This document shows positions 698-59,932 of a stretch of 64,000 bases of DNA, in pieces. This stretch comes from Mantamonas sphyraenae STR306 (Eukaryota; Protista; CRuMs): contig JAPMXV010000018.1 of NCBI GenBank assembly GCA_026936335.1, positions 217,266 to 281,265 on the forward strand. Direction: 5' to 3'. The first letter of the stretch is position 1. The number at the start of each line of letters is the position of its first letter. The notes beneath the pieces are model-generated. The model was not told the origin of the DNA. It saw nothing but the letters and a program-made list of their open reading frames with translations, and ran no database searches. The position numbers were made by a program, and so were the translations under genes.

Positions 698-2302
698 TCA
701 TCCCATGAGGGCTTGCACGTCTGCGACGAGCTCCTTGGTGATGCTGCTTGCTTCCACTTTGCTGAGATCCAGCTCCATAGCCACACAGAGGTCTTTGGCC
801 ATCTCGTTGCCCTTGATGAGAAACCCGATGGCCAGCAGCATACGGTTGATCACATCCTCGTCTTGTTCTGCACTGCCCGACGAACTCTCTGCGTTCTCCT
901 CACCATGGTACAGTGAGTTGAACGCTTGTGCCGTGGCACTGACAGCCATCACCACCCTGTCCTCGTAGTCGTCCTCTGCACTGCCGTGCACCTCATGCAG
1001 CATCCTTCCCACGTTGCAAAACAGGGCTGCCGCAGTGCCTCGGACCTGCTTGTGGCTGGAGCCGAGACCTTTGCTCGCGGCATCCAGCACTTCCTGCAGG
1101 CCGTCCTCATCCAGGGCAAAGCCCATCCCCTCCTCGGTGGCAAACAGGTTGACAAACACACGCAAGCTCATGAGCACAAGGGGCATGGGCAGTGACGAGT
1201 CTTCGTCTGCTTCCAGGAAGCGCGTGAGCAACCCTCGGAGTAGATCCGGGCACGTTGTGGTAAAGTGCGAAGCTGCATCACGGTTACACAGCAGCACACG
1301 CAACACATCGACGACAGGGAACACCTTGTCGGTGGGCATGACCTCGTACAGAGTGGCTACGGTGTCAAACATGCCCTGAGTAAACACAGGGTACAACGCA
1401 TCCTTGTCTCCGCTTTCAACCTGCTGTTGTCTTTCCATCTCTGTCTGCAGTGCACTCAACACGTCTGTGTCCACCTTGTCGTCCAGCTTGCTCTGTTTGA
1501 TCTGCCCGCGGATGCGATCAAACACTGCCGGCACACGCGTTGTGTTGAACACGACGGGCTTCACGTGCTTGTGGATGTGCATCACCTGCACGCTGGGTTG
1601 TGACTGAGTCATTCCAAATCCAGCCCCGCTATATCCGCTGCTTGCCTGTTCCTGGCCCGCAATGGCGTTGTGGCCTTCAAACTGCATCTTGTTGAACATT
1701 TCTTCGATCATGGGGCGCAGCATGCGTCCTCCAGGCGTGTTCATGGCCTCTTCAGGGAGGCCCGAAATGTACTCTGGGATGTTGCCGCCTGTGAGGAACT
1801 GGCATGCCTCTTGCGTAAAGTTGTTGCAGTTGTGCGTCAGCAGGTGGTAGTCTTGCGCCCGATATCGGTTGGCCACCTCCTGCACCCAGGCCATGAACAC
1901 GTCTGGTTCAACGTCAGTGGAGCCGAGATCCACCACGTCCACGGGATACCCGTACGGCGTCTGCATCTGTGCGAAGTGAGGCGGAATCCCGTCAGGAATT
2001 GCCCCTGCGTTTGTCTCACGGGCTCCTGGCACGGCTTACTGGAGGATCGCCAAAAATGCCCTGGCCGTAGTAGTACTCTGTATCGTAGACAACAATGCCG
2101 GTGTGCCTGGTGATGTGTGTGGATGGACGTGTGAGCGGCGGCAGGCGTGCAACGTTGCATCTCGTTTCCGCTTCCACGCAACAAGGCGCCGTGCATCGTA
2201 CCAGATGCCATCGATAGACTGGCCAAGAATCATGCCACTGAAACTCTTGGCCATGCCTCCACTGAGGTCATAAACATGCAACGCGACTTTGTATTTGCCC
2301 AT
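698..2302 (-). CDS. DeSI/PPPDE peptidase (desumoylating/deubiquitinating) fused to a C-terminal PUL (ARM-like) domain; 2 introns
   Basis: Exon 1 MGKYKVALHVYDLSGGMAKSFSGMILGQSIDGIW; intron 2201-2107 (GT..CAG); exon 2 HTGIVVYDTEYYYGQGI (catalytic His); intron ~2039-1967; exon 3 has YHLLTHNCNNF (catalytic Cys) and PUL-like FPVVDVLRVLL / LMSLRVFVNLF. Confidence 0.88.
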
Positions 2303-2409
2303 CGGTGGCTGTTTGCTCACACTGGCGCAGGTGTTGTTGTTTGCACTGTGCTGTGCACACTCATGGCCCGTCTCGCAATGCAAAAATCAACGGTATAGTC
2401 GTATATTTA

Positions 2410-2915
2410 ACGGAACAGCCAATGTCCGTGTTTCTATGGATGGGTCTACCGTTGTGTGTTATTCCGTGTGATATCGTCACGCGTACGATCGACACGCTGC
2501 CAGGAGGTGGTAGAGACGTGGGTTGATCAGCCACGCTGGTTGGTATGGTGCACAGGTTTGCCACGAAGTGAATACGCTATGGAAGCGACGTCTGAGACCG
2601 TGGCCAGACGAAGGAAGTCTGGCGGTTGAGTGTTGTCAAGAGGGAGGTTGAATTCACCTTGCCGCCTCACCGTCCAACCTGCTTCGCAAAGAGGCCGAAC
2701 CCATAAAGATGGACGCTAAAACAACACATGCCAGTGCTGCTGCAGGAATAGGGCGGGCAGCAATGGGTTTTGGCGATGGCAATCCATGCTTCGGATTGCC
2801 TGTAGGCGAAAGTGTATGTGCAGGACGCGGTGGTCAGCAATGGTGATCGTACACCAAAATGGGCCATGTTCAGTGTGTACAGACTGCTCGTGCCCTCTTG
2901 TAGTCAGCCACGTGT
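2410..2915 (+). ncRNA. Putative large structured non-coding RNA or structured leader upstream of the Fanzor-like gene (strand inferred)
   Basis: At least 10 stems read directly, e.g. 2445-2450/2509-2514, 2466-2472/2476-2482, 2603-2609/2617-2623, 2637-2644/2893-2900, 2671-2676/2710-2715, 2735-2740/2757-2762, 2778-2785/2793-2800, 2849-2854/2875-2880. G-U pairs and GNRA loops (GAAA 2808-2811, GCAA 2837-2840) favour the + strand. Confidence 0.55.
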
Positions 2916-2970
2916 GTGAGCGCCCCCGTGTTGTCGTCCTCTGCCTCATCCAAGCAAAACACACAAGCAC

Positions 2971-5900
2971 ATGGAAGACGAGTTGCAGCAACTCGTCGAG
3001 CAGGTACCTCGGCTGCGAAGTGCCCAAGAAGTGGACGGACACATTGAATTGAGGTACACAAGGCCGGCGGACGTGCCAGAACAGCAGACGTCTGAGTACG
3101 TCCTTGTTGGTGAGGATGGCATCCCTGAAGACGGTGAAGACGATGAGGACGATGGCGTGCACTATGTCAGCACAGAGGATGTGAAGGGATTGACAGTCGA
3201 AGCCCTGAAGGCCCTCCTGAAGGACGTCGGCGCCAATCGGCAGGGAGGCAAAGACACCTTACTACGCAAGGCGACAGAGTCGGTGTCCGTCCTCAAATGG
3301 CAGGAATGGCAGGAGAAACGGTGTAAAGTGGACTCCCTCGTCACCGAGGACCAGAAAGCCCTGGCTGACAGAGGAGAGGGCGGTGAACAGGCGAATGTGC
3401 CAACGGCAGAAAACTTAATCAAGGTTCTGGGGAGGTTCAAAAAGGAGACACTGGAGGAAGTGATCCTGGCGTACAAGAGAATCTGGGGAGAACCGAAAGA
3501 ATCGTCTGACACAGAGTCGTCATCTAGCTCAAGCTCAAGCAGCAGCGGCAGTGGCGGTGGCGGACACGCACCCAGCCGGAATGTGCACCCGTTTTTCGCC
3601 TCGGTGACGCTGTCCAGGCTGAAGAAGGACGCGGTCGTTAAAACCTTGGGTAGAATGGTGGAGGAGCAGCTCGCAACGCACGATGGAGTTGTCAATGTGG
3701 CGCGTGCGTTGCAGCAACAAGGGGAGCAGGGTCAGCGCCGTGCGGTGCAGCGCACGGAGGAATTGTTCAATGCTCCCAGCCACGCCGACTATGACAATGA
3801 GACCATCAAGGACATGGTCTGTGAATGCGACGGCATTGTGGTGGACTGCAACGTGATTGGTGTCGAGCACATCGACAGGGGTGGCGATGCAGAGAAACCC
3901 CTGCAGCTGAACGCCGCCGGTGTCGCGCTGACACAGCAGCTGCAAGAAATCCTGCAGGCATCGGACCAGCCAGTCTGCTTTGTGAGAACGGTGGCGTCCC
4001 TACAAGAGCGCTTCGAGGGAAGGAACTGCAGCATTGGGGAGCAGAAGCAGTTCAGAAGGGATGCCACAGGGTACTTGACAACATCATCCCTTCCCGATCC
4101 GAACAGCAAGCACCGGAAGAAGGCGAAGGTGCTTGCTGCGAGAGAAGCAGCGCCCGCATTGGGCCTGGCGCGTCTGAGAACGGTTGTGGCGGATGGGCGA
4201 GAAGCGTGCTTGGCGCAAATGATGAGCTTGCCAGGCAAATTGGCCGTGGTATCATCCAACGCCAAAACAGAGACGATGATGTACAGCAAAGGGTTGCAGC
4301 AAGACCTGCTCGTTGTCAGCGTGGTGAAACCAAGGGTTTTTCCAAAGCTCGCGGAAGTTGATGGAGATGCCGTACCGGGAACGGTTGGCGAGGAGGATGA
4401 AGAGATGGTGATGGAGAAAAACGAAGAGGAAGATGGTGAAAAAGGCGAGGTGATGGTGGTGGAGCGGAACGAAAATGATGAGATGGACGCGGTGGTGCCT
4501 GACGCAATGGTGTTGGTGGAGGAGGTGGCGGTGGAGCCCGAAGAAATGATGGAGGGCAACGAGAACGAGATGGACGCGGTGGAGGCTGACGGAATGGTGT
4601 TGGTGGAGGGAGAGGACGAGGAAGAAGGTGGAGGGGCGGGCAAGTGGTGGGTACGGACGATGCAGCTGCACGACACGAGGAGGGTCTTCCACGCCACTGT
4701 TGTGACTGGCATGTACGCAGGTATGACTGCCCCGACGTGGACACCGATGGAAAGGAAGGAAATCATGTCCACGCTGATGGGAGACCACCCCGAGCGCTTG
4801 CGGACACTTTCACTCATGGCACGCAAGCGGAAGCAGCTCGGCCACAACCTCACACTACTGCAGGCGCAGACGGTGCAGGACATGTATGGGGCGGAGATAC
4901 ATGAGGGATGGACGCCCGCTCAGTACGTGGGCGTCCTCGGAGAACTGGACACTGCGTTGATGAAGCACCACCTGGCCGATGCTGGAGTATTCCACGCGCG
5001 CGGTGTGTTGTACAACTTTGCAGCCCCACTGTCTGAGTGGATGACGTACATGCAGGTTCCGAACGAGCAGCAAGTCAAGCAGGCCATGGCAACGGATCTG
5101 GCACATGTCCAGATCGTGCAAGACGACGGAACCACCCGGCCGGTGAAGGCTCACGACATCACTCCACACGACTTTGTCTGCCCAGACAACAAGAGCGTGT
5201 TTATCACAATGAGGGAAGCTCACAGCACGCAGCAGCAGGCGAAAGAGGAGAGCGCGGAAGTGGGTTCAGTTTCGATGGACAAGCGAGAGCACGAGCAGGA
5301 TGTGCCCTTGGCACATGATGGTGAGCAGATGGAAGTGAGCCACAGCGTGGATGGTGCCGGCGAGGAGGAGGTGCACAACACTGTTGGTAAGCTCCTTCGC
5401 AGAGTTGCCCACCTCAAAACGGAACTCGACCATCACGTCAAAGATCCGGCCACGCTACTGCGCCACAAGGAGATACACGAAGTCGAGCGGGCGCAAGCGA
5501 ACAGTCACACGGCCTCACAACCCGTCGTGGGCGCGCCTGATCTGCTCACGCGATTCGCAGACGACCTGTGCTCCTTCTTGGACAAGGTCAAGAAGGTGGT
5601 TGTGGATGGTATCAACAATACCATCAGACAAGGTACCACCAGCGTCGTGCCATCGGAGGCCGATGTGGCCAGTGCCGCAGAGAGAGTGCGCCCAGCATGG
5701 CTCATCGGCGATCGGCGGGCCCTGACTTGGGACATGCTCCCTGCTGTCCACAAGTGGTGTACGAGCGAGCTCCGGGCCGATATGACGAAGCATCACGTCG
5801 CGGTACGTTTTGGTGAGGTGCTGCTGGAGTGCATGCGCCAAACCACCGAAGAGAAAACAAGCGAGTTTTTTGTGGAAGTGGCGACCGCCGTTGTGTCTGC

Positions 5901-7998
5901 CCACTTGGCATTTACAATGGAAGGGACCAAGAGGGCATTGCAAAAGGCCGGTGTGTCGTTTGCAGGGTGCCAGCTTGGAGAATGGAGCCGGCTCGAGCGG
6001 CACGGGGAGGAACGCCGCTCGTGGGACGAGTGGTCCTTGCATGTACGGAATCTGTTCCAGACGGAGTATAGCCAGTACGAGGGTGTCCTCCAGGGTCTGG
6101 ACGAACGATACTCGGATCGCCAGTTTCTCAAGAAGAAGGTGATGAACGTGGAGGCGAGCGATGCGCATTTGCGGGCATACGTGCAAACCGGCCGACAATT
6201 TTCCAGCACGTCAAAGGCGTTCACCATCACGGGGACATTGTGGCAGTATGGGCTGTCCCGGCTGTTCGACAGCTGGGCAGAGTCCAACAACGAGGAGATC
6301 CGGGTGTGCACGAAGGCAACCGCAACCAAAACATGGGAAGCCGTGTGTAGCGACATCAACACACACCACAGCATCTTCATGTCCGTCATGAAGTTTGAGG
6401 AGTCGAGGTTGTGGCGCCTTCCTGCATTGACGGGCAGGCAAAGGGACGAGTTGATTGGGGTAGAGACGCGTTCTCTGCTTTCGCTGCTCCTCTTGTGGCC
6501 AGATTTGGTGAGCTGCATGCAAACCAACACAATCAGGCAGTGGTCCGGCGGTATTACGGTCCAACACGGACAGCCGCTTCGTTTGGTCGTCTACCGCCCG
6601 GCCACACTGGACCACGTCACGTCGAGCGGAGAGCTCCGTGAGATTTTGCGGCCTCTGAGCTCATTGAAAGCGGCAATCGTGGAGGCGGAGAATGAGGTGT
6701 CCGGGGCAGCTGCCGAGAAGCGTGCCAAGATGAAGAAAGCAGAGGAACAGAAGAAAGCAGAGGAACAGGATAGGAAGGGCAAGAAGAAGAGGCGCGCGGA
6801 GGAGGAGAGCGAGGACAACCAGTCGACACAAGCGCCGTTGCAGGACACCAAGAGAGCCAGGCTGGATGAATCAGGCGAGGGTGACATTGTGGACATGGGA
6901 GAGAGCAGCGAGCCGATGGAAGCGGCCAAGGAACCACAGAGTGACGACCGAGAGGACAGGGCCACGACACAGCACGCAGGCAGCAAAAGCCACTCCCAGT
7001 GGAGCAAGGATCGACAGCGACAGCTGGTGAAAAAGCTCGTTACTGTGTGTACCGTGGCACACGTGTGTGGGCTGGGCAAGGAGGTTGAAGACGCACTTGG
7101 CCAGCAGCTCGGGTTCCGGCACCTGGGGAAGCCGAAGCGCAACGGGCGCATCGACGTGCGCTTCAAGAAGAAGTTTAAAGTGAGGAATCACGATGAGGCT
7201 GCAAGGTTGATCGCCAAAACAGCCTTCTTGGTCAACGACATCGGTAGGAAGAATGACACGCTGGTGGTCTTCTTCTGGCACAAGGGGAGATTGAGGCAAA
7301 GGAAACTGCCCTTCCCCTCACATCGAGACCTCAGGGAAAAAATGCATCTGCACCGACTTGCCAAGGTTGAGAAGGAGGACGAGCCGAAAAAGCACGGGCA
7401 GTTGCGGCGGTACGGGCGTGACGTGCTCGAGAGACATGTCCTGCGCACGGTAAGGTCCGTGAGGAACGTGATGGACGGATTTGGCCTGCACAACATGATC
7501 TACCTTGCGCAGTCGAAATTCTACGGAGGTTTGTCCCTCAGCACGCGCATCCATCACGCTTTCGCAAGACACATGATCTGGGCGGACGTGGCAGAGTGGA
7601 TGACTTCCAGTACATGCATCTGTGGAGGTGGCATTGCACACCCGCATGGGTTCAGTCTCTCGAGATGGGACAGAGTTGTGACTTGCCCTCATTGTGCCAT
7701 CAGCCGCAACCACCACAACAAGCACACGCTGATGTATCACATGGCCCACGACGCCGGAGGAATCACGCCCCTCTCCGACAGGGACGTCAGAGGAGCACAG
7801 GGGATCCTTGTAAGGCAGCTGCACCTGTGGCTGTTTGGCAAAGAGCCCCTGTCGTTCTCCAGCCGCAATCCCAAAAAGAAGAAGCAAGAAACGGCAAAGG
7901 CGCTGGTGCTGGAGAAACTCAAGTCACGAAGGAAGGCGGTCGAGGGTCCACAAGATCATGGGATGGTGGTTGAAGAGGGTGGAGGTGGGGATGAGTGA
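2971..7998 (+). CDS. Giant (1675 aa) Fanzor/TnpB-family RuvC nuclease-like protein with N-terminal SAP domain
   Basis: Intronless ORF. RuvC-I FLVNDIGRKN (D1423, nt 7237); Fanzor-type relocated Glu in ADVAEWMTSSTCICG (E1542, nt 7594); Zn ribbon C-x-C...RVVTCPHC; RuvC-III DRDVRGAQGI (D1605, nt 7783). WSGGITVQHGQPLRLVVYR resembles the Fanzor1 wedge strand. SAP motif LTVEALKALLKDVGANRQGGKDTLLRK near aa 74-100. Confidence 0.8.
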   Translation: MEDELQQLVEQVPRLRSAQEVDGHIELRYTRPADVPEQQTSEYVLVGEDGIPEDGEDDEDDGVHYVSTEDVKGLTVEALKALLKDVGANRQGGKDTLLRKATESVSVLKWQEWQEKRCKVDSLVTEDQKALADRGEGGEQANVPTAENLIKVLGRFKKETLEEVILAYKRIWGEPKESSDTESSSSSSSSSSGSGGGGHAPSRNVHPFFASVTLSRLKKDAVVKTLGRMVEEQLATHDGVVNVARALQQQGEQGQRRAVQRTEELFNAPSHADYDNETIKDMVCECDGIVVDCNVIGVEHIDRGGDAEKPLQLNAAGVALTQQLQEILQASDQPVCFVRTVASLQERFEGRNCSIGEQKQFRRDATGYLTTSSLPDPNSKHRKKAKVLAAREAAPALGLARLRTVVADGREACLAQMMSLPGKLAVVSSNAKTETMMYSKGLQQDLLVVSVVKPRVFPKLAEVDGDAVPGTVGEEDEEMVMEKNEEEDGEKGEVMVVERNENDEMDAVVPDAMVLVEEVAVEPEEMMEGNENEMDAVEADGMVLVEGEDEEEGGGAGKWWVRTMQLHDTRRVFHATVVTGMYAGMTAPTWTPMERKEIMSTLMGDHPERLRTLSLMARKRKQLGHNLTLLQAQTVQDMYGAEIHEGWTPAQYVGVLGELDTALMKHHLADAGVFHARGVLYNFAAPLSEWMTYMQVPNEQQVKQAMATDLAHVQIVQDDGTTRPVKAHDITPHDFVCPDNKSVFITMREAHSTQQQAKEESAEVGSVSMDKREHEQDVPLAHDGEQMEVSHSVDGAGEEEVHNTVGKLLRRVAHLKTELDHHVKDPATLLRHKEIHEVERAQANSHTASQPVVGAPDLLTRFADDLCSFLDKVKKVVVDGINNTIRQGTTSVVPSEADVASAAERVRPAWLIGDRRALTWDMLPAVHKWCTSELRADMTKHHVAVRFGEVLLECMRQTTEEKTSEFFVEVATAVVSAHLAFTMEGTKRALQKAGVSFAGCQLGEWSRLERHGEERRSWDEWSLHVRNLFQTEYSQYEGVLQGLDERYSDRQFLKKKVMNVEASDAHLRAYVQTGRQFSSTSKAFTITGTLWQYGLSRLFDSWAESNNEEIRVCTKATATKTWEAVCSDINTHHSIFMSVMKFEESRLWRLPALTGRQRDELIGVETRSLLSLLLLWPDLVSCMQTNTIRQWSGGITVQHGQPLRLVVYRPATLDHVTSSGELREILRPLSSLKAAIVEAENEVSGAAAEKRAKMKKAEEQKKAEEQDRKGKKKRRAEEESEDNQSTQAPLQDTKRARLDESGEGDIVDMGESSEPMEAAKEPQSDDREDRATTQHAGSKSHSQWSKDRQRQLVKKLVTVCTVAHVCGLGKEVEDALGQQLGFRHLGKPKRNGRIDVRFKKKFKVRNHDEAARLIAKTAFLVNDIGRKNDTLVVFFWHKGRLRQRKLPFPSHRDLREKMHLHRLAKVEKEDEPKKHGQLRRYGRDVLERHVLRTVRSVRNVMDGFGLHNMIYLAQSKFYGGLSLSTRIHHAFARHMIWADVAEWMTSSTCICGGGIAHPHGFSLSRWDRVVTCPHCAISRNHHNKHTLMYHMAHDAGGITPLSDRDVRGAQGILVRQLHLWLFGKEPLSFSSRNPKKKKQETAKALVLEKLKSRRKAVEGPQDHGMVVEEGGGGDE

Positions 7999-8004
7999 GT
8001 GTGA

Positions 8005-8201
8005 AACCTTCCACACGTGCTGTGTGGCATCAGGGCAAACAACAACGATGATGAACGAGGATCTGCTGGGACCACTTTCACGTGCAGTCTCTCAGATAGT
8101 TTATCAGTGGCCAAGTTTACACGACGCTGCGTATTTCGTTGTTGCTCCGCTGTTGTGCACAGCACAGTGGAAACAACAATGCCGTGCGACGTTCTTGTCG
8201 C
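8005..8201 (+). ncRNA. Candidate omega-RNA (Fanzor guide scaffold) or structured 3' end
   Basis: Stems 8011-8016/8022-8027; 8061-8065/8093-8097 plus 8068-8072/8087-8091, with loop CCACT able to pair with AGTGG 8106-8110; 8040-8048/8136-8144 (9 bp perfect); long hairpin 8137-8181; 8186-8191/8196-8201. The position directly 3' of a TnpB/Fanzor-like ORF is where omega-RNAs are encoded. Confidence 0.45.
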
Positions 8202-8218
8202 TTGCGATGCGATCCACG

Positions 8219-8599
8219 TCAACCCATGCGCATGGAACACTTGACACCCGGCGGACAGTTGCCGTCGCCCTGAGAAAGGTAGCGCAGCTTCTCCGCGGGG
8301 GACATCTGGCGCAGCACGGAGTTGGGATTGAGCCAGGGCTCGAGAATCAGGGTCTGGAAGCCCGAATGAAGGGCCACAAACACCACAAACGTGACCAGGT
8401 ATTTACAGAGGAGGAACCAAAACATGCGGTTGCTCTGTTCCTCGTCCAGACGCACCACTTCTTCGTCGTCGCTGGATTCGTCCGAGTCCTTGCTCTTTCG
8501 CCGCCTGCGCCGCACGGCACGCGGTTCATCGCCGTCGCTACGACTACGCACGGGTCTACGACGCAATTGGACAGTGTCCAGCCCGTCGTTCTCGCTCAT
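8219..8599 (-). CDS. Small hypothetical single-pass membrane protein
   Basis: ORF from MSENDGLDTVQLRRR with basic/acidic tract, then hydrophobic FWFLLCKYLVTFVVFVALHSGF. Confidence 0.55.
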   Translation of the reverse strand: MSENDGLDTVQLRRRPVRSRSDGDEPRAVRRRRRKSKDSDESSDDEEVVRLDEEQSNRMFWFLLCKYLVTFVVFVALHSGFQTLILEPWLNPNSVLRQMSPAEKLRYLSQGDGNCPPGVKCSMRMG

Positions 8600-26019: not shown

Positions 26020-28131
26020 TCAATCGTCTGGCACCTGGTACTCCTCTTGCAGTGCACGCACGTACTCTGTCTTGACCTGGGGCGAAGCCACGGCCTTGAG
26101 TTTGTGAAACACCTGCACGTCGTCGCCATCGTACACATCGAGAGGGCCGTGCACACGGACCCCGTTGACAAACGTGGCCAGGGTCAGCTTGTACTTGTAG
26201 ACGTCATCACTCCTGGCCAGCTTCTGCACGGCAGCGTTAAAGTTGAGCTTCCGCCGCTTGCCGCCCTTCCCCGGCTTGTCTTCCAGGTGGTCGTACTCGC
26301 CGGGCCTGGACAGGTCTTTCCAGCCCTGGTCGTTCTCCACGGGCTCGACGTAGATGTCCATGTCTCCCGAGCTCTTGTTCGCCCAAAAGGTGACCTTGAG
26401 AGTCTGGTCGGGCAGCCGGTAGGTGATCTCGTCCAGGATGTGCTGGAACAGGTTGACGGTGACGTCGAAGCTGAGGTCTGCCAAAGCGCGGGTGTGGAAC
26501 ACACAGAGGTCCATCTCGGAGAGGGGCACGTATTCCATGCCAAAGATTTGTGCAGTGTTGTGGTAGGCGACCATGACCCCGTCCATGTTGCCGATGCGCA
26601 CCTGCAGGCTGTACTTGAGAAAGGCGGCTCGGATCATGTCGTAGTACTCGCGCTCATACGAGTTGCGCTCGCCTGTGACACGTGTGAGCTTGTACCCGAC
26701 GTGTTTGCGATAGTTTGCGCAGTCGATGCGGATGGCATGTGTGGCCCGCGTCTTCAGGTCGAAGGACTTGTTCTCGCGAGGGATCTCCGGGTCCCAGCAG
26801 TCGAGTTGGGAGCGCATCATGAATCGGTCGATCTTCATAAAGTGGTAGGCCTCCTCGTCGTTGTTTGGGGGCGGATTGTGGATTTTGAGCATGGAGGTGA
26901 GGTACTCTTCGGCGTCCAGGGTGAGCATGCGCTCAAGGATCTTGCCCAGGTCGAGCAAGATCTGGTTGTTGGGGGCCTCGCTGCCCGGATCGGAGTCGAT
27001 GCTGTACACAGAGTCTTTGGGACGGAGGTAGACCGAGACGGGCTTCATCGCGCCGCGGGTGAAGGAATCGCGGGCGAGTTGGAACTGGGGCGAGAGGGTG
27101 GACACGTTGACGGGTTTGAAGTTGGAAAACAGAAAGTAGAGCTGGGAGAGGACGGAGGTCATGGAGCTGGTGCTGGCCTTGTAGCGGCAATTGTGCTGCA
27201 GGGCGAGGTTGTGCAGGTTCTTGTCGGTGCTGGTGGTGACAAAGGGCGGGATGGCGTCAAAGTCGATCTCGGCCGGGTCGTGGATGTGGGCCAGGAACGG
27301 GTCAAAGTAGAAATCGCCCGTGCGGGGATCCTGTACATAGTGAAGGCCCGGGTTGGTGACCGCGTGACGTAGCGAGCCGGCAAGGAGAGGCACGGGGATG
27401 TCTGTGGGCGAGGGGATGATCTCATGGGTGGGAAACTCCATGTCCATGGCATCCATGTTGTCCTGCACGGTGCGGCTCTGCTTGGCCTGCTTGCGAGCAA
27501 GGCGCTGCTGTTCTTCGCGGCGTTTGACTATGCGGTGTTGGGGTTCTTCAAAAGGTTTGGAGCGGTAAATGATGCCCTGGGACGGACTGCTGGCCATGAC
27601 GATGTTGTTGAGGCCACGGGGAGCCGCGCGGGTGGGCGGCTTCTCCGCAAAGGCCTGCTGAAAGGCCTGGTCAAAGGCGCCGCGCTTGGGACGGGAGGAA
27701 GATCTGGAGGCATTGGGCTGGGAGGCAGACGGCGGCGAAGATGATGACGACTCCGGGGATGTGGATGAAGAGGTGGCAGCAGCGGCCTTGCGTGTGCTGG
27801 TGCCGCGTTCGAGAAGTTGGAGAACACGCTCGGGCCGGGGCTTGGTGCTGGCGGTGGAGGCGTCTGCGGCCATGGAAGCAAGCTGGCCCTGGGGCGGGAG
27901 GGTGCCTGGAGAAGGCGCTGGCGCGTCTCTGGGTGCGGATTTTGTCCTGCGGGAGCGTCGTCGGCGTGCAGCGCGCGATGCATTTGTGGCGTGGCGGACA
28001 AGCAGCAGGGCGTCGCGGCCTGGTTGGCTTGTGGAGCACAGGAGAGAGGAGGAGGAGGAGGAGGAGGAAGCGCTCACTATGTGGGCGACAGCCGAGGCTG
28101 GGACGAGGGAGGAGGTACTGCGTCTCAGCAT
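26020..28131 (-). CDS. PET127: Mitochondrial RNA 5'-end processing nuclease Pet127
   Basis: NPGLHYVQDPRTGDFYFDPFL, ASTSSMTSVLSQLYFL, MRSQLDCWD..FDLKTRA, EREYYDMIRAAFLKYSLQVRIGNMDGVMVAYHN; presequence-like N-terminus. Confidence 0.92.
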   Translation of the reverse strand: MLRRSTSSLVPASAVAHIVSASSSSSSSSLLCSTSQPGRDALLLVRHATNASRAARRRRSRRTKSAPRDAPAPSPGTLPPQGQLASMAADASTASTKPRPERVLQLLERGTSTRKAAAATSSSTSPESSSSSPPSASQPNASRSSSRPKRGAFDQAFQQAFAEKPPTRAAPRGLNNIVMASSPSQGIIYRSKPFEEPQHRIVKRREEQQRLARKQAKQSRTVQDNMDAMDMEFPTHEIIPSPTDIPVPLLAGSLRHAVTNPGLHYVQDPRTGDFYFDPFLAHIHDPAEIDFDAIPPFVTTSTDKNLHNLALQHNCRYKASTSSMTSVLSQLYFLFSNFKPVNVSTLSPQFQLARDSFTRGAMKPVSVYLRPKDSVYSIDSDPGSEAPNNQILLDLGKILERMLTLDAEEYLTSMLKIHNPPPNNDEEAYHFMKIDRFMMRSQLDCWDPEIPRENKSFDLKTRATHAIRIDCANYRKHVGYKLTRVTGERNSYEREYYDMIRAAFLKYSLQVRIGNMDGVMVAYHNTAQIFGMEYVPLSEMDLCVFHTRALADLSFDVTVNLFQHILDEITYRLPDQTLKVTFWANKSSGDMDIYVEPVENDQGWKDLSRPGEYDHLEDKPGKGGKRRKLNFNAAVQKLARSDDVYKYKLTLATFVNGVRVHGPLDVYDGDDVQVFHKLKAVASPQVKTEYVRALQEEYQVPDD

Positions 28132-28238
28132 CGAGGGAGAAAACTGGGTTGGGTGGGGCAGGGAAGGGGAGGTGTGGATGCATTGTGGGGCGGATCTGGT
28201 TCCATTTTGGGTTTGTGAGCACAGTGGGACGCAGGCGA

Positions 28239-29306
28239 TCACTCCAGCTCCAGCTCCTCAACAAAGGTGACCACGTCACGGAGGGACTGGAACAAAGACG
28301 GATCAAGGATCCCGTCGAGTTTGGCCAGCGCTTGCTGGGCACGGAAGAGCATGGCACGCGTCTTCCATTGTTCGTCCGACAACCGATGGCTGCTGCTTGA
28401 CTCCTCGCTGTCGTCGTCCTGCGTCTCCAGGACGGAGCCGTGGATGAGAAAGTTGCGTGGGATCTCGGGAAACTGGGAACGCGGATGGTCGTGCAGGAAC
28501 TGCTTGGTGGCATCGTGGATGCGGCCGTAGTCTGCGTCCTTGTCACCAAATTCAACACAGGCTACTTGGATGCCGTGCTCGGCAAACAGTTTCTCGGGGT
28601 CGTCGAATCCGGATTCCGGCAGCGCGCCGAAACGCATCCACTCTTGGTAGAAGGCATCCATGGACGGGCTGTGAACCATGGCTGCGTTGAGAACATCGCC
28701 GGCAATGCGTGAGCCGGGCGCCATGAGGAGATGGAGCTTGTCCAGGACGGTGTGGACGTCGTCTTCCTTCAAATACATGAGCAGGCCTTCAATCATCCAG
28801 AATGACGGGATGTTGGGTTGGAAACCATGTGCAACCAGGGCCGAGGGCCAATCTGGATTGCGCAGGTCGTAGGAGATCTCGCACACGTTGTCTGTGGCCG
28901 CACCAAGCTGGCTGAGAATCCGTTGCCTGAACTTCATCACCTCGGGCAGGTCGATCTCCCACACGCTGGCGGACTCGGGGAGGTTCAGACGGAATGAGCG
29001 TGAGTCGCCACCGACGCCCAGCATGACGATTTGCTCAATGCCTGCCTCGTTGACAGCCTGCACGACCTTGTCGTCGAGAAAGCGAGTTCGCACAGCGACG
29101 GCGGACACGGTGGAGTCCAAGTCGCCACTCATGGCCGCAAGAGCGTTGAGAAATTCAAATCCAAAGTCGGTGGCCATGTGTTCGGCAAAGGGATCGGCAA
29201 ACAGCCGCACCTCGGGGTCTTTTTCCGTCTCCTTGGCGCGCGCCGCCGCGATGTACAGCGCGGTGGCACCCAGGGGACATTCGTGGTCCTCAAAGACGGT
29301 GGTCAT
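28239..29306 (-). CDS. SAM-dependent methyltransferase, LCM/ML2640-like family
   Basis: TALYIAAARAKET..LFADPFA, VRTRFLDD, QIVMLGVGGDSRSFRL, WEIDLPEV, WMIEGLLMYL. Confidence 0.88.
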   Translation of the reverse strand: MTTVFEDHECPLGATALYIAAARAKETEKDPEVRLFADPFAEHMATDFGFEFLNALAAMSGDLDSTVSAVAVRTRFLDDKVVQAVNEAGIEQIVMLGVGGDSRSFRLNLPESASVWEIDLPEVMKFRQRILSQLGAATDNVCEISYDLRNPDWPSALVAHGFQPNIPSFWMIEGLLMYLKEDDVHTVLDKLHLLMAPGSRIAGDVLNAAMVHSPSMDAFYQEWMRFGALPESGFDDPEKLFAEHGIQVACVEFGDKDADYGRIHDATKQFLHDHPRSQFPEIPRNFLIHGSVLETQDDDSEESSSSHRLSDEQWKTRAMLFRAQQALAKLDGILDPSLFQSLRDVVTFVEELELE

Positions 29307-50757: not shown

Positions 50758-53616
50758 TTAGTCGGTTTTCTCCTGCGGTTGCATCTCGACTTCCTCTTCG
50801 CGCACAGCAGTATAGTGCTTGGTGATACGATAGAGTCCGAGGCGGTGGCGCAGCTTCCACAGCGCAAAGAGAAGGATAAGGAGGACAAGGATGGGCAGGC
50901 CGAGGACGGCAAGCCAGAATGTCCAGTGGTAGCGGATGGGCAACTGGACAACAACGACGGAAGAGGGAGCGTCCTCTTCTTTGGCCGACCAGCTGGCGTT
51001 CATGCCACGCTGGATGAGAAAGGTGAGGGCAAGCAAACCCTCACCGTCGGTTTTGCCCATGGGGCTGATGCTGACGGACAAGGGCTGCGGTTCAAAGGGA
51101 ACCATGTCCTGGATGCTGTCGCTGTCTCCAAAAGACCACGTGGTGGCGTTCCACGAGCTGTTTCCCTGCTGGGAGGCCAGGCCAAGGAGCTTGAAGCGGC
51201 CCGCGCGGCACACGCGTGGCTCGTGCCAGATGAGCGGGATGGTGAGGTTGCGCACGGTGGAGTCAAACATGCCAAAGGGATAGAGAAAGAGCGCTGGACC
51301 AGACACAGTGTCGAGGGCAGGGCGGATGTCAGCGGCGCCAAACATCATGCGCTCCCAGGAGATGTTTGCGTGGCGCGGAAGGGTGTCGTTCAGGTGGACG
51401 CGAACAACAGGACGAGGCAGGGGGCCTGTTTGGTCACCTGGATGGAGAATGGAGTCGTACATCCAGGGCTGGGAAGCCCAGGCACGGATGGAGGCGCCAC
51501 TGGCGGGTTCGATGTCGATTGTGTCTGCCGGAAACTGGTGGTAGGTGCAGGCTGGATGGTTGGTACCCACGGTGATGGTGTAGCGGTTGGGTAGGTTTCG
51601 TGGATAGCGCTCCATGTGGAGGGTGGGCTGAAGGAGGGTGCAGTTTACATCGGGCCTGGTCCAAGTGTGATCGAGCTGGTGTAGGACACCCAGGCCTCCT
51701 ACGATGATGTGGATGTCCAATCGATCGCCTGGAGCCGGATGAGTGAAGGGTGCGTCGAACTGGATGTACGATCTGGGAGTGCTGGTCGTCCACACGGTGC
51801 GGTTGGCAGAGCTTGTCCATTCCGGCATTGTGGATTGCCAGGGCGAACGAGGAGGGATGTCAAAGGGGGTGGTTGATCGAACAGTGACGTTGATGTAGGA
51901 GATGTCACTGGTGGACTCGCGGATGGGGCAGGTGTTGAAGTGGGGCACGCGAACATACACGTAGTGCGTGTTGAAGTTGGTCTGCGCATGGACGTAGGGC
52001 TTGGGCGAGCAGTCTGGGTCGACTGAGACGTGCGCAGTCTGTCGCACACTCAGGACAATGGTGGGCACCTGCGAGAGGGCATCCAGAGTGACGGTGGAGG
52101 ATAGCGCGGATCGTGCGTCGGCAGCTGTGTTGACGCTAACGACCCACGAAGGATCAGCGAGGGGATCGCCAAAGGCGACGTGCTGTGGCGTGACCATGGT
52201 GCGCAAGCCCTTGTCGCTGGAAGAAACCTGGAGGTCAAAGATGAGGCGCTGGGCACGTTCGACGCGGCAAGGAGATTGGCCGTTGTCGGTGAGAAAGGCG
52301 CGGAGGTGTTGTGTGGACACGAGATTGTTTGCGCGGGTGAGATTGAACGCTTTCAGGGGTTCAAGGAAAAGGGATGGCTTCTTGCAGAGAGGGACGTCGT
52401 CGGGAGGGGATGGAGTGGGGTTTGACGTGTGTGCTTCGTTTGCGTGGACTGTGCGGATACGGTGAAAGTCTGGTTCGTCCCAGACAATGGATGCGAGGTG
52501 AAGGTCGGAGAAACGGACGACAGCATGGTCGACATCGAGGTTTTCGACGGTGAGGGTGAAGTTTGGATGGACGAACTTGCGACGGTCGGCATGGCCCCAA
52601 TCATCCGCGTCGATGACATGGAGGAGATTTGTGGTGCGATTCTGCTCCTGAACACGTGTTTCGTGCACCAGAATCAGGGGCTGGCGGCGCGTAGGTGCGT
52701 TGAGGAGGTCGAGGACACGGTACCACTTCCAGGGCAGGTCTGCGTCTGCAAAGCGGTTGTTTGAGCGCACGCTGTAGAGGGAGACATACACCATGCGACA
52801 GCATCCGAGAGATAGGGCGGCGCCGTGGGTTTGTGTGGTTTGGATTGGGCGCAGGACGACGGTGGACGGAGAGCTGACTTTTGTGACGGCGTCCTCGGGA
52901 ATCCAGCTGGCGTCGACGAGATGGGCAATGTTGTAATACAGTTGGGAGCGTGCATGTCCCATGATGCTGCTGCTGTCGCCGTACTCGTCACCATAGGCGT
53001 GTGCGTGCGCAAAGCCAAGGGTGTGGCCTAGCTCGTGGACGACAATGTCGAGGCGGAGGCGGAGAAGCCAGATGCGGCAAGGATAGTAAATGTAGCTGGG
53101 ATGATGGATGCAATAGCCCGAGCCGATGCCTGTGACGTCATTGCCGGGGCCATGGCGGCAGCTCGTGGATTCAGGAAACACGTAGATGACTCGGTGCCAG
53201 CGAGCATCTGCCGTTTGGCGAGGATACTGAGCGTTGACAAGGATATCTGCGAGGTCTGCCCAAACACGTTCGTTGCACTGGCCGTCTTGGGTGGTGTTTG
53301 CCTTGCTTACGTCAATCTGGACCGGTCCATAGATTTTTGTGTCGAGGGCAAGGGTGAGTTTGCCGTGGCTGGCTTCAAAGAGGACGCCTGCAGCAGAAGC
53401 GTTGTTGGGAAGGTTGCTGCTTGGGTTGCCTGCAATGATGTCGAGGATCTGGGAGTCTGTTGCGGTGACGGAAGCGTCGTTGAAGTCGACCTTGACGACG
53501 GTGACGGTGATGGTGGGGGGCACGGGCTCGAGGGCACCTGCACGCCAGGCGAGGGTGTGTGGTAGGAGGGCGAGGAGGGCGAGAAGGGCGAGGAGGAAGA
53601 GGAGGCGAGGGAACAT
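50758..53616 (-). CDS. Surface-anchored zinc metalloprotease, gametolysin (M11)-like
   Basis: Signal peptide MFPRLLFLLALLALLALLPHTLA; HELGHTLGFAHA; EYGDSSSIMG Met-turn; C-terminal TM. Confidence 0.8.
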   Translation of the reverse strand: MFPRLLFLLALLALLALLPHTLAWRAGALEPVPPTITVTVVKVDFNDASVTATDSQILDIIAGNPSSNLPNNASAAGVLFEASHGKLTLALDTKIYGPVQIDVSKANTTQDGQCNERVWADLADILVNAQYPRQTADARWHRVIYVFPESTSCRHGPGNDVTGIGSGYCIHHPSYIYYPCRIWLLRLRLDIVVHELGHTLGFAHAHAYGDEYGDSSSIMGHARSQLYYNIAHLVDASWIPEDAVTKVSSPSTVVLRPIQTTQTHGAALSLGCCRMVYVSLYSVRSNNRFADADLPWKWYRVLDLLNAPTRRQPLILVHETRVQEQNRTTNLLHVIDADDWGHADRRKFVHPNFTLTVENLDVDHAVVRFSDLHLASIVWDEPDFHRIRTVHANEAHTSNPTPSPPDDVPLCKKPSLFLEPLKAFNLTRANNLVSTQHLRAFLTDNGQSPCRVERAQRLIFDLQVSSSDKGLRTMVTPQHVAFGDPLADPSWVVSVNTAADARSALSSTVTLDALSQVPTIVLSVRQTAHVSVDPDCSPKPYVHAQTNFNTHYVYVRVPHFNTCPIRESTSDISYINVTVRSTTPFDIPPRSPWQSTMPEWTSSANRTVWTTSTPRSYIQFDAPFTHPAPGDRLDIHIIVGGLGVLHQLDHTWTRPDVNCTLLQPTLHMERYPRNLPNRYTITVGTNHPACTYHQFPADTIDIEPASGASIRAWASQPWMYDSILHPGDQTGPLPRPVVRVHLNDTLPRHANISWERMMFGAADIRPALDTVSGPALFLYPFGMFDSTVRNLTIPLIWHEPRVCRAGRFKLLGLASQQGNSSWNATTWSFGDSDSIQDMVPFEPQPLSVSISPMGKTDGEGLLALTFLIQRGMNASWSAKEEDAPSSVVVVQLPIRYHWTFWLAVLGLPILVLLILLFALWKLRHRLGLYRITKHYTAVREEEVEMQPQEKTD

Positions 53617-53682
53617 GGGTTTGGGCTCGCGCGCGCTGGGTTGGCAGAGAAAACCCACTGCAACGCGGCAACAGAAAGGGAG

Positions 53683-54099
53683 ATGTCGGGGCAGGGGCAA
53701 GGGCGTGTGTTTATTTTGGTGGTCGCAGTTGTGGTGTGTGCATGTGTGTGGGAGGCGAGTGCGCTGCCCGCAAGCGCGTTGAAGGATCCAAGGATGAAAA
53801 AGCTGCTGGAGACGCAAGCGAGGCAGCAGGCGAAGCAGCAGGAGATATTGCGTGGGAACAAGGAAGGAACGTCGCAAAACGGGTTTGCGCTTCCTCAGCT
53901 GGTGGAGCTGGGTGTCGGGCTGCTGGTGGGGGTGGTTTTGGCGGTCGTGTTGCGACGGGTGGTGATGAAGCTGGTGAGGGACCAGATGGTGGAGAATGAG
54001 AGAGAAGAGGAGGAGGAGGAGGAGGAGGGAGAGGACGAGGGGAATACGGGGAAGAAGCGAGACGGGGACGGTGAGGGCGGGAAGGCAAAGATGGAATGA
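53683..54099 (+). CDS. Small hypothetical signal-peptide/TM protein
   Basis: Signal-like FILVVAVVVCACVWEASA, TM LGVGLLVGVVLAVVL, acidic tail. Confidence 0.55.
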   Translation: MSGQGQGRVFILVVAVVVCACVWEASALPASALKDPRMKKLLETQARQQAKQQEILRGNKEGTSQNGFALPQLVELGVGLLVGVVLAVVLRRVVMKLVRDQMVENEREEEEEEEEGEDEGNTGKKRDGDGEGGKAKME

Positions 54100-54152
54100 A
54101 TGAACAGCTGTGAACGAGGACAAACGATGTGCATTGCATGGACGATCGAGTC

Positions 54153-56719: not shown

Positions 56720-59700
56720 TCATTCGTCCATTGGGACTCGCTGACGTTTGGCAGGATGTGCATTGGAGTTGATGGAGTACTCGGGCGTGCGCTTTTTGGA
56801 GGACTGTTCGAGGGGAGCATGGGGCAAGGAGAGGGAGGCGACGGCGCTCATGGAGGTGGGTCGGGAGGTGTGGAAGGGCCGGAGGCGCATAAGGATAAAG
56901 TGATGGATGACGTTGTGGGGCTGGACGTCGATGGGACGAGGCGGGGTGGACTTGTTGGGAGTGGCAATCTGGAGGGAGAGCCAGGTTACGCCGCAGCGAA
57001 AGTTTGCACGGATGGCGCGGAGGAGCTGGTCAGCCGTGACGGAGGGATTGAGGAGGCGGGCAAACAGAAAGAGCTCGACAGGCGGGATAGGGATGTTGCC
57101 GAGGGCGGTGGCAATGTGGAGGAGGAGGTCGTCGACGGAGAGTTTGGAAATGGGGCGGTCGATGTAGAGCTCGGGGTCGCTGAAGATGCCGGCATACATG
57201 TCGTCGGTGTTGAGCCAGAGGCCCTGGAGGTGTGTGAGGAGGGAGTGGAACTCGCGGTTGGTGCAGCTTCTTCGCTCGCCGTTGGGAAATTGGGTGGCCC
57301 AGCCGGAGCGAATGGAAACCGGGTTCCAGGTGTCAAAGAGAGGCAGGTGTTGGTCAAACTCGCCGCGGGCCCAGTGGTGCGAGTCGTGCACGTGGCTGCG
57401 TAGAGATTGGAGCTGCTGCCAGCGTGTGGGGCGCTGGCTGGAGCGGACGCTGTCTGTGGCGACTATGATCATGTGGAGAAGTGTGTACATGGGCGAGCCG
57501 TGGGTTTCGGGCTGGTTGAGCCAGCACACCTTGAGATCATCGGCAGTGACGCCGAAGCGGAGGTCTGAGGCGTCGATGGCCTGGTGATACTGGTGCCTGG
57601 TCATGGTGCGTCCAAGAAGGAGGATAAAGTCGGCCAGGTCGCCCTTGGAGATGGGTACGTTGTCAATGGCGAGGCAGACCTGGTGAATGAGGTCGACGAG
57701 GGTGCCATGGCAGATGAGAAGGCGCGCAAGGAGTCCTTCCTTGCGGGTGAGGGTGTTTTCCGGATGCTGGGCAGCGAGGGTGCGCAGGGTGAGCATCAGG
57801 GTGGCAAATTCGGCTTGGGTGCTGAATCCGCGTTGAGAGCTGAGGCCTTTTCGCCAGCCCGAGTGGGCCACGGTGGCAGGGAGGGGTGTTGATGTGGAGG
57901 ATGTGGAGGGTGTGGGTGTGGTTGCAGAGGAGGAGGAGGAGACAATGGTGGTCTGCTTCTGCTTGGGTGTCTTTCCGTGGATCTTGTTGCGGCGAGCTTG
58001 TTCGTGGGCTTGAAGGGAGGGACCATCCATCCACTCGGAGCCACCAATGCGGAAAAGGGGCACCTCGGCGGACTGGACGTCCATGTGGAGAACTTGAGGG
58101 TCGTTGGTGGTGCGAGCAGGGGTCGCGGGCGTGGGTTCCGGGGACTCCTGGAAAGCAGGCGAGCGTTCAAGCGGGGGGATGTCCAGGGCTTTGATGTCGA
58201 CGTAGGTGGTGGGCCTGTTGTCCAGGAAGCGTTCGAGACGGTTGACGAGAGTGTGGAGGATGGAGTACTCCGGTTGGGAGACGTCCGAGTCGTGCAAGTA
58301 CACGAGACGGAGCGAGGTGTGGGTAAGGCCACGTCGAAGTCGATGAATGATGGTACCGACGAAGTTGGAGTCTGTTTTGGGTCGCACGAGGCAGGTGAAG
58401 AAAGCGAGCTCGACGGGAGGAATGGGCAAGTTGTCCAAGGCGGAGAAGAGCTGGAAGATGGCATGGGAAACGGAGCCACGGAATCGATAGTTTGTCTTGA
58501 TGTTGGATGAGGTGCGGGCGCGGGCAAGGGTGCGGAGACGATCGACGATAGCGGCAAACTCGCGGTCGGTGCAGGACTTGCGCTCTCCTGACTTGCGAAA
58601 GGAGTCGACCTCTTGAAATGTGGGTGGCCATGTTTCAAGAGGAGGCATGGAGACATCGTAGTCGCCCTGGGCCCAGTGGACTGGAAGGACACCTTGCTTT
58701 TCGGCCATTCGACGAGCGTGGTCGAGCCTTCGGAGGTCTTTTGCTGTTGTGGGCCTGTCGTGGGGGTCGACATCTTTGAGACCTTCCTCGAAAAGCATGT
58801 GTACGATGGAGTACATGGGCACAACGCCGGAAGGGGGTTTGCGGAAAGCAACGACCCTGAGGCCGGCGTCGGTGGCGCCCTTTTCCGGACTCAGCTTTTC
58901 GAGGGCTGTGGAAGGAGAGATATTGCAACATACTCTGCCGAGGAGATAGAGGAATAGGGACATGTCCAAGTTGCAGAGGGGCGTGTCAAGGGTCACGAGG
59001 ATGATGGTGAGGATGTCCGCGAGTGTGCCGTAGCAGACGCGCGATCGCACGACTTGCTCTTCATCTGGCGGGAGAGTGTCGAGGGGGTGGGCATCAGCAA
59101 GGGCTCGCATATATGTGACGAGGGCCTGGTACTCGGAAGGAGTGCTGTATGACCGTGCTCCGTAAGTCCACGGCCTGATGATGACAAAAGGACTTGTTGA
59201 GTGGGCGTTGGACGGGTGTGCGACGTGCGGTTGAGTAGACGATGCGTTGGAGGAGGCGGGTCTGGGAGGCGAAGGGGTTGAAGGGCGGAGCGGGGAGGCG
59301 GCGGGTAATGCATGGGGCCGTTTCCGCACGCGCTTGGGGGGCAGGATGACTACCATGTCGTCTGAATCACTGTCTGAATCACTGCTATCGTCATCTGAAT
59401 CGTAGTTGTACGATGTACTTGTCGTGGTTGAGGTTGTGTGTGCGTGGAGGGGTGGGGAGGTGACGAGATCGCTGGAGTCTGCGTCACGAAGTTCTCTGAT
59501 GTGGAGACGGTCGTTCGAGTTGTCGCTGGTGTGGTAGGCATACACAGAGGGGGGCTGGAGGGTTTGAAACTGTTGCTGAGGCTGTGCTTGAGGTGGTAGG
59601 GGGGGAGGGGGTGGGTTTGCGGTGGAGTTGGCGTCACCCTGGACTTCACTGATGCGGGGGGCGTCGTTGGAGATGTTTTTGGTGCGGTATGTGTGCATGT

Positions 59701-59932
59701 ATGGGAGCTGGGGAGGTTGGAACTGTTGCTGAGGCCATGTCTGATGCTGGGAGGGGACGTGGTGTGGAAAAGGCTGCAATGGGCTGGGACTGGGCCGCGG
59801 GACCGAGCCGTAGGGAATGTTTACGGGCACAGGGACGTAGATGACCTGTGTTTGTATGTATGGGTTGCGTTGGACAAGTTGAGACCATGCAGAGTTGAGG
59901 AATTGAGAATTGAAGTTTCCGGATGGATCCAT
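56720..59932 (-). CDS. Subtelomeric unknown protein (1070 aa) with four copies of an unrecognised domain
   Basis: Intronless ORF with Q/P-rich N-terminus, four repeats with ER.S.T..EF..L / L.N.P / GVT...L / LH / RPTT, and C-terminal PAKRQR NLS-like motif. Confidence 0.75.
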   Translation of the reverse strand: MDPSGNFNSQFLNSAWSQLVQRNPYIQTQVIYVPVPVNIPYGSVPRPSPSPLQPFPHHVPSQHQTWPQQQFQPPQLPYMHTYRTKNISNDAPRISEVQGDANSTANPPPPPLPPQAQPQQQFQTLQPPSVYAYHTSDNSNDRLHIRELRDADSSDLVTSPPLHAHTTSTTTSTSYNYDSDDDSSDSDSDSDDMVVILPPKRVRKRPHALPAASPLRPSTPSPPRPASSNASSTQPHVAHPSNAHSTSPFVIIRPWTYGARSYSTPSEYQALVTYMRALADAHPLDTLPPDEEQVVRSRVCYGTLADILTIILVTLDTPLCNLDMSLFLYLLGRVCCNISPSTALEKLSPEKGATDAGLRVVAFRKPPSGVVPMYSIVHMLFEEGLKDVDPHDRPTTAKDLRRLDHARRMAEKQGVLPVHWAQGDYDVSMPPLETWPPTFQEVDSFRKSGERKSCTDREFAAIVDRLRTLARARTSSNIKTNYRFRGSVSHAIFQLFSALDNLPIPPVELAFFTCLVRPKTDSNFVGTIIHRLRRGLTHTSLRLVYLHDSDVSQPEYSILHTLVNRLERFLDNRPTTYVDIKALDIPPLERSPAFQESPEPTPATPARTTNDPQVLHMDVQSAEVPLFRIGGSEWMDGPSLQAHEQARRNKIHGKTPKQKQTTIVSSSSSATTPTPSTSSTSTPLPATVAHSGWRKGLSSQRGFSTQAEFATLMLTLRTLAAQHPENTLTRKEGLLARLLICHGTLVDLIHQVCLAIDNVPISKGDLADFILLLGRTMTRHQYHQAIDASDLRFGVTADDLKVCWLNQPETHGSPMYTLLHMIIVATDSVRSSQRPTRWQQLQSLRSHVHDSHHWARGEFDQHLPLFDTWNPVSIRSGWATQFPNGERRSCTNREFHSLLTHLQGLWLNTDDMYAGIFSDPELYIDRPISKLSVDDLLLHIATALGNIPIPPVELFLFARLLNPSVTADQLLRAIRANFRCGVTWLSLQIATPNKSTPPRPIDVQPHNVIHHFILMRLRPFHTSRPTSMSAVASLSLPHAPLEQSSKKRTPEYSINSNAHPAKRQRVPMDE

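Follow-up and report, generated by a model that had tools for sequence, protein, structure and literature searches.

Is an uninterrupted reading frame of 1675 codons in the protist Mantamonas sphyraenae really a Fanzor-type RNA-guided nuclease, and if so, why is the protein so large and what keeps it in the genome? The frame lies at 2971..7998 of the window, by which we mean the whole 64,000-nucleotide stretch of DNA that was analysed (this feature and the parts of its element named below are on the plus strand unless noted), and we think that the answer to the first part is very likely yes, with RNA binding and cleavage inferred from sequence and predicted fold. The identity rests on motif order, invariance, purifying selection, fold and a Fanzor-typical element anatomy in combination. 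A preliminary description, made from the sequence alone, had claimed a 5-kb intronless ORF with the TnpB/Fanzor/Cas12 signature; the frame and every motif quoted there were confirmed, the word 'intronless' on the DNA sequence only, without RNA data. It had also claimed that a RuvC-II Glu is missing while D1423, E1542 and D1605 are present, and this too held, since these three residues (codons starting at 7237, 7594 and 7783) and the cysteines C1549, C1551, C1572 and C1575 are unchanged in 11 of 11 aligned genomic copies, an alignment that spans proteins as distant as about 22–25% identity in the middle part. The old RuvC-II site carries no Glu, reading YLAQ here and VLQP in a distant group of relatives. 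Fanzors are defined by loss of that Glu and by an alternative one six residues before the zinc finger (PMC13565253, PMC10530073), and the giant ORF meets this rearrangement in the residue columns of the 11 copies, with a spacing of exactly six residues between E1542 and the first zinc cysteine. The superfamily order is likewise met (D1423, T1545-S1546, C1549/51/72/75, R1604-D1605), at a D-to-T spacing of 121, four short of the quoted 125–275 (PMC3627910) and about 15 longer in the sister group. The RuvC-I motif reads NDIG or DDIG in place of the usual DPG or DLG, and the RuvC region (aa 1350–1640) is under strong purifying selection, with dN/dS of 0.05–0.3.

How convincing is the C-terminus as a fold? 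The RuvC and zinc-ribbon (TNB) domain with its three acids was placed at 7018..7890 from Pfam, ESM Atlas, fold and alignment columns. We take its likeness to known proteins to be beyond chance because all nine members of the C-terminal alignment match Pfam Cas12f1-like_TNB, all of them below cut-off (best E 0.0024), because Atlas look-alikes point at 0.95 to TNB and DUF8286 clusters (giant viruses and Mucoromycota), and because the distant group in the same genome has canonical DPG, DERYTS and QRDRGS at the corresponding positions. The AlphaFold model of aa 560–1660 is poor (mean pLDDT 42.8), and the RNase-H/RuvC fold whose absence would have counted against the claim is seen at moderate strength, as a five-strand RNase H topology at aa 1417–1544. 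As for the proposed clustering of the triad in one site, D1423 is at the end of strand 1 and E1542 within strand 5, and the D1605 region has a pLDDT near 30. The best structural matches to the RuvC part are CasPhi (Z 8.4–8.5, rmsd 3.8–3.9, 126–130 residues aligned), followed by Cas12f (Z 7.0–7.4), Cas12g and GtFz1 (Z 7.1); Z values of 7–8.5 are in the range of common folds, and no single match is strong alone. Foldseek gave no match with E below 0.001 for either the C-terminal or the N-terminal model.

The remainder of the core is less well resolved, with a probable REC and WED at 5518..6720 (aa about 850–1250), read from a low-confidence model and invariant columns. An alignment to GtFz1 begins at aa 851 and spans 318 residues (Z 7.1, rmsd 12.9, again on a low-confidence model). 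The wedge strand claimed earlier is a conserved W-x-GG...R-x-V strand within the probable WED region, and the charged linker claimed before RuvC-I also held, as a charged low-complexity insertion of about 90 aa with a basic NLS-like run at 6733..7005, absent from other subfamilies. The Fanzor core is predicted by the model to cover aa about 850–1640, some 700–800 aa and near the usual 600–700 aa (PMC11423790), so that the earlier statement of at least twice the typical Fanzor size holds for the ORF, the excess being an N-terminal fusion. Without a phylogenetic tree, we consider Fanzor1 likelier than Fanzor2, pointing to the long helical REC-like region, the GtFz1 alignment and the Mucoromycota and giant-virus clusters; the G-rich flank of the element is Fz2-like. 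Protein homology searches found no outside homologues for the RuvC region, the FEN-like region or the sister group, and they covered only proteins of 0.55–1.75 times the query length, so that with the full-length query Fanzors of normal size fell outside their range. A profile search gave a single 207-aa match (E 4e-4) without a contig on record, nothing useful came from viral and metagenome scans, phage tblastn, NCBIfam or PDB sequence searches, and Fanzor and Mantamonas were not found together in the open-access literature searched.

What, then, accounts for the extra size? Our answer, predicted by modelling and in our judgement likely, is a fused N-terminal module of about 850 aa with a SAP domain and a FEN-like fold. 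The SAP domain (aa 67–121, 3169..3333) is supported by Pfam SAP at E 0.07–0.14 and by a structure match (VIA Z 5.4, 27% identity to the PIAS1 SAP), the Atlas rows being mostly SAP proteins, and a second small helical bundle follows at aa about 140–250. Next comes a fold resembling the FEN/Exo1/T5 5'-nucleases with an H3TH-like part (aa 261–645, 3751..4905), interrupted by an acidic repeat at aa 457–556. That this region adopts a FEN-like fold is again a model prediction that we hold to be likely: in the model of aa 1–760, pLDDT is 75–90 over most of the FEN-like core, and FEN-superfamily nucleases fill 9 of the 12 top VIA rows among 48,161 chains (185–274 residues aligned, Z 5.9–8.2), led by T5 exonuclease (Z 8.2), Exo1 (7.7), FenA (7.0) and GEN1 (6.7), then ExoIX, T4 RNase H and Xrn1. 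The individual Z values are middling and it is the enrichment that carries the case. The best viral structural match of the N-terminal model, an XRN-like protein, was not significant. A transposase within the N-terminus had been considered and was rejected, the fold there being SAP plus FEN-like, with aa 680–850 left without an assignment.

FEN1 has seven acidic metal ligands at well-known motif positions. Mapped by secondary structure, D292, the first-strand Asp, is the sole clearly kept acid of the seven, and other ligands are replaced in all copies (the beta2 Asp by R or S, DxD by N-x-K, the GxD Asp by Y or H). D292 never varies, the positions of E357 and E392 hold an acid in at least 10 of the 11 copies, and K432 is conserved together with a basic patch (K380/R382/K383). 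The FEN-like core is under purifying selection, with a dN/dS of 0.16–0.3; no match to XPG_N or XPG_I was found within the giant Fanzor frames. Because most metal-binding acids are absent and yet selection persists, we favour a pseudo-nuclease: the domain, if real, is likely to be catalytically inactive and to bind DNA ends or junctions, both the lack of activity and the binding being inferred. No N-terminal fusion of SAP and FEN-like domains to a Fanzor was found in the literature searched.

The gene does not stand by itself, and here the preliminary description had overlooked the context, which is a 5.85-kb mobile element with inverted ends and a candidate omegaRNA. The element runs from 2334 to 8179, with the Fanzor as sole gene and without a transposase. 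A TG at 2332..2333, repeated past the right end, is the left target duplication and the predicted TAM side, with a G-rich flank before it. There follow the left terminal inverted repeat of 26 bp (2334..2359, 96% complementary, of the type TTGT...CTGTGCACA), which the earlier locus boundaries of 2380–8220 had missed, and a 5' non-coding part (2360..2970) with neither significant RNA structure nor an Rfam match. The right repeat (8154..8179, minus strand) doubles as the 3' arm of the outer stem of the RNA, and beyond it the right TG duplication and host flank (8180..8196) form the predicted guide segment, its position set by analogy to known Fanzors (PMC13565253). A copy on contig C43, 97% identical, has the same limits and agrees with the left boundary; with 26-bp inverted repeats present, a reading without terminal repeats was rejected. 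To its left lies a PPPDE peptidase-PUL gene and, further off on the right, ribosomal L28e, both of them ordinary eukaryotic genes, and because there are bounded repeats, dispersed copies and eukaryotic flanking genes we can speak of a eukaryotic mobile element, as a Fanzor should inhabit. The host spacer that holds it amounts to only about 70 nt (window 2300–2333 and 8180–8221), the element lying 29 nt upstream of the PPPDE peptidase-PUL ATG (minus strand), with about 40 nt between it and the stop of the upstream gene; possibly it displaced or replaced the PPPDE peptidase-PUL promoter. Elsewhere in the window are two adjacent long minus-strand ORFs (56720–59932 and 59945–63370, 1070 and 1141 aa) unmatched in Pfam, a gametolysin M11 domain (50758–54123) and Pet127 (26020–28242).

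Nor is it a lone gene: the genomic-copy check that had been proposed was run and found many mobile copies in an assembly of 25.06 Mb, 78 contigs and diploid state (PMC10492846). A C-terminal domain search of the genome returned 26 loci, among them a close group of 14 elements in five subfamilies with proteins of about 1,680 aa and 12 intact frames, and a distant group with frames of up to 2,058 codons; Pfam TNB added 38 more loci, most with frames of 1,500–2,090 codons, for a total of about 64 Fanzor-like loci. Close and distant groups have a common right end, GTGCACAGC-N-ACAA followed by T (control 0). Several smaller observations may be recorded. The two broken frames are L029 (C33) and L035 (C50), and L037 has a 7-bp tandem duplication within its left repeat. 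About 30 frames of 1,480–2,090 codons and four of 630–850 codons occur among the further loci, and giant Fanzors make up very roughly 1.5% of the 25-Mb genome. Right-end motifs without a Fanzor match within 3 kb occur at G000:C33:104802, C44:38519, C41:20221, C56:146206 and C72:8105, and might be 'ghost' or truncated elements, perhaps suppliers of guide RNA only. The word GCTGTGCAC also turns up in a short repeated palindromic unit (G000:C15:264235-264277, C33:166780, C35:267732, C68:274327), conceivably another small element family.

Does the element encode its own guide? Downstream of the frame, 7999..8179 holds a candidate omegaRNA scaffold of 181 nt, a long stem with a three-way junction, in the position of known Fanzor omegaRNAs, these being at the right end, with the duplication inside the scaffold and the flank as guide (PMC13565253). 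The 3' RNA folds with z of -2.6, -4.9 and -3.7 in three lineages and takes one shape in all of them, a long stem topped by two hairpins, which 4–5% of shuffles reach in each; the outer stem closes 7–8 nt before the element end with different sequences per lineage. The shapes were compared from per-sequence folds without a covariation count, the MAFFT/RNAalifold consensus being out of register. The conserved folded 3' structure is thus shown, and its omegaRNA role, expression and loading onto the protein are inferred, there being no expression data; Rfam has no match for the element. A strongly structured RNA at 2410–2915 was considered and rejected (z -1.36). One relative, L030 (G000:C29:559538-569537), has in its left non-coding region, near the left end, a 181-bp inverted copy of the 3' omegaRNA region, 86% identical, from which a second, outward-facing guide RNA could possibly be made.

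The junctions are where the history of the element can be read. The right end is intact in 18 of 18 copies read. In the TN duplication the T never varies among the 14 copies, 10 of which have a G directly before it; right flanks read TG in eight, TA in four and TC and TT in one each, with TA in three of four members of the DDE-linked group. A 2-bp TN duplication is present in eight of the 14 (TA/TA and TC/TC included, one of the eight with an extra base), and two copies duplicate only the T. Four copies have lost the first bases of their left end to right-flank sequence, over 4, 8, 9 or 10 nt and with the register kept to within 1 nt, and the three long scars end on one or two matching bases; the 4-nt scar is uncertain, its subfamily having one copy, and the left/right asymmetry, with three to four cases, is only marginally significant. 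All four are shorter than the cut distance of 14–17 nt reported in papers on SpuFz1 and GtFz1. Transposases leave duplications of constant length without removing the end of the element, and repair of a cut empty allele from the filled allele predicts left-only overwriting; on genomic scars and small numbers alone, we lean towards homing repair as their explanation. Subfamilies A and B differ by 30–53% over the 5' 4.8 kb and by 3–10% over the last ~1.2 kb, dS falling from 1.1–1.5 to 0.2 towards the 3' end, and C and D show a similar gradient; the subfamilies are mosaics, with 3' homogenisation of a kind that ordinary recombination in the most conserved part can produce. Guide-driven jumping between similar sites was considered and rejected, the right flanks of related copies lacking evident similarity.

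Who moves the element? The genome has 19 DDE_3 (IS630/Tc1-mariner) genes, and 16 of them (0.27 expected) stand 5–10 kb upstream of a Fanzor locus in the same orientation, the DDE-linked loci including C14:82867-91316 and C17:157010-165118; eight of the 16 belong to the distant group sharing a 25-nt right end, 18/25 identical to that of the giant element. Those without a detected Fanzor downstream are at G000:C29:71522, C11:189702 and C43:173082. The distant-group members at G000:C52:331706 and C71:212724 lack an upstream DDE gene and differ by one base in their right end, so non-autonomous members exist there too. An IS630/Tc1/mariner element should have inverted repeats, and does (26 bp, imperfect in sister subfamilies), and a strict TA duplication, which is not met, the duplication here being TG. 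Pattern searches upstream of DDE genes, those allowing mismatches or gaps being partial but including C14 and C17, found no left repeat of the giant-element type, and the transposase is therefore not shown to recognise the element's ends. Helitron2 identity, which calls for asymmetric repeats with hairpins, was rejected on the symmetrical repeats at both termini and the lack of any PF14214 (Helitron) match in the genome, a search without a positive control; Crypton identity was rejected as no tyrosine recombinase was found in the genome. Mobilisation of the giant element in trans by a DDE transposase is, on balance, only marginally favoured.

Putting this together, the element limits, the dispersed copies, the intact triad under purifying selection and the fused SAP and FEN-like fold (the folds as model predictions) are shown, and the reading that we prefer, at a probability of roughly 0.6, is a non-autonomous DNA transposon with a giant Fanzor as sole gene, maintained as a homing endonuclease. 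A transcript over 7999–8181 would run into the right flank and load the protein as omegaRNA; the protein would then recognise an empty site (G-rich flank and TN, then the guide match) and cut 14–21 nt in, and the filled sister chromatid or, in this diploid genome (PMC10492846), the homologue would serve as template for the repair, so restoring or spreading the element at that locus. Where the target tail of the left broken end, which reaches up to the cut, was trimmed only to a chance paired base, it would overwrite the left end in register, and the right end would always be copied whole. The FEN-like domain would no longer cut and, with SAP, would bind junctions or DNA ends, possibly tilting repair in favour of copying, and movement to new sites would be supplied in trans by the IS630/Tc1-mariner-type transposase of sister elements.

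What might a sceptical colleague prefer instead? The FEN-like domain could still be active as a rewired 5' nuclease, resecting the ends left by the cut and giving a two-nuclease protein, and the invariant D292, the acidic E357 and E392, the basic patch and K432 do speak for it; however, at least four of the seven usual ligands are missing in every copy and XPG_N and XPG_I go unmatched in the giant frames, so we regard this as unlikely. A bleaker view, and one that we find very unlikely, has the Fanzor part as an RNA-guided binder without cleavage activity, silenced or TldR-like, or as passive cargo, the scars being ordinary gene conversion with the empty allele. The unusual NDIG/DDIG of RuvC-I, the empty alleles that a diploid genome offers and the lack of in vitro activity of the Fanzor CrFNuc-1 (PMC10530073) are in its favour, but three acids held invariant under strong purifying selection are not needed by a nuclease-dead derivative, and the scars fall at the left end only.

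The remaining rival concerns mobility, in that the giant protein alone might move the element, by cutting with or without the guidance of an RNA and by copy-in repair anchored at the right end; the DDE genes would then be cargo. For this speak the many giant Fanzor loci (most of them) without a transposase, precise right ends with variable left junctions, 5' divergence with 3' near-identity among subfamilies, and the failure to find a matching left repeat at DDE-bearing elements, a Helitron or a tyrosine recombinase. Against it, no similarity is evident among the right flanks, and hence the guides, of related copies, so that there is no sign of guide-driven retargeting; inverted repeats stand at both ends with identical spacing, and 2-bp duplications dominate, which is DDE-like; a DDE gene accompanies one sister group at a fixed distance; and 3' homogenisation can arise by ordinary recombination, as seen in MCi-2 (PMC3627910). 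We consider self-mobility improbable, and are similarly doubtful of a bolder version in which giant Fanzor fusions drive their own copy-in, the SAP/FEN-like module holding or processing ends, still catalytic in some lineages and reduced to a pure DNA clamp in that of the giant element.

The homing reading matters to us because what Fanzors do for eukaryotic elements is unsettled, homing having been demonstrated for bacterial TnpB and IscB only (PMC13565253), and a small diploid genome with dozens of intact giant Fanzors and readable junctions makes the question testable. The predicted fusion would be an RNA-guided nuclease that acquired a DNA-end-processing fold, an activity that is inferred, and kept it after the loss of catalytic residues, a natural counterpart of engineered exonuclease–Cas fusions. 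For editing, size is a drawback, but the core (aa about 850–1640) might suffice by itself, using a short G-rich TAM. New here are the Fanzor–FEN form with a probably decayed catalytic site, the genome-wide link to DDE transposases and the junction scars consistent with homing.

How does all this sit among known systems? Set beside Fanzor1 (SpuFz1, GtFz1 and PpFz1; PMC10432273, PMC11423790), most of which have 600–700 aa, with a mean of 620 for all Fanzors, the giant at 1675 aa is almost three times that size, its flank is G-rich on the left with a TN duplication whereas Fanzor1 TAMs are AT-rich, and its candidate RNA has 181 nt as against 75–150 nt. Restorative homing by TnpB (IS605, IS607; PMC13565253) has the proposed logic in common, a cut at the empty site and restoration from the sister; experimental homing is listed for TnpB and IscB and not for Fanzors (PMC13565253), and for the giant Fanzor the evidence is genomic scars only. 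With the FEN-like superfamily (T5 exonuclease, Exo1, GEN1, FEN1, Xrn1) the protein has in common the predicted fold, the first-strand Asp, a basic patch and an H3TH-like glycine motif, but it has lost most metal ligands, carries the domain as a fusion and is 6–10% identical to solved members. Mariner-Fanzor1 elements (PGv-1, PUl-1, PUl-4; PMC3627910) come as autonomous forms with a Tc1/mariner-type transposase upstream and non-autonomous ones with the Fanzor only, with a 2-bp duplication, and because of that layout the DDE-bearing sisters fit as autonomous partners; the giant element differs in its TN, not strictly TA, and in that matching left repeats of the transposase-bearing sisters were not found. 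CRe-1/2/3 and MCi-2 (PMC3627910) resemble it in their intact 3' ends, variable 5' ends, duplications of variable length and near-identical 3' parts joined to different 5' parts, and the variable duplications at 5'-eroded Fanzor1 elements were described for CRe-1/2/3 without an explanation (PMC3627910); these elements belong to Helitron2 or are unclassified, and lack symmetrical repeats, whereas in copies of the giant element the duplicated sequence takes the place of a left-end stretch of the same length.
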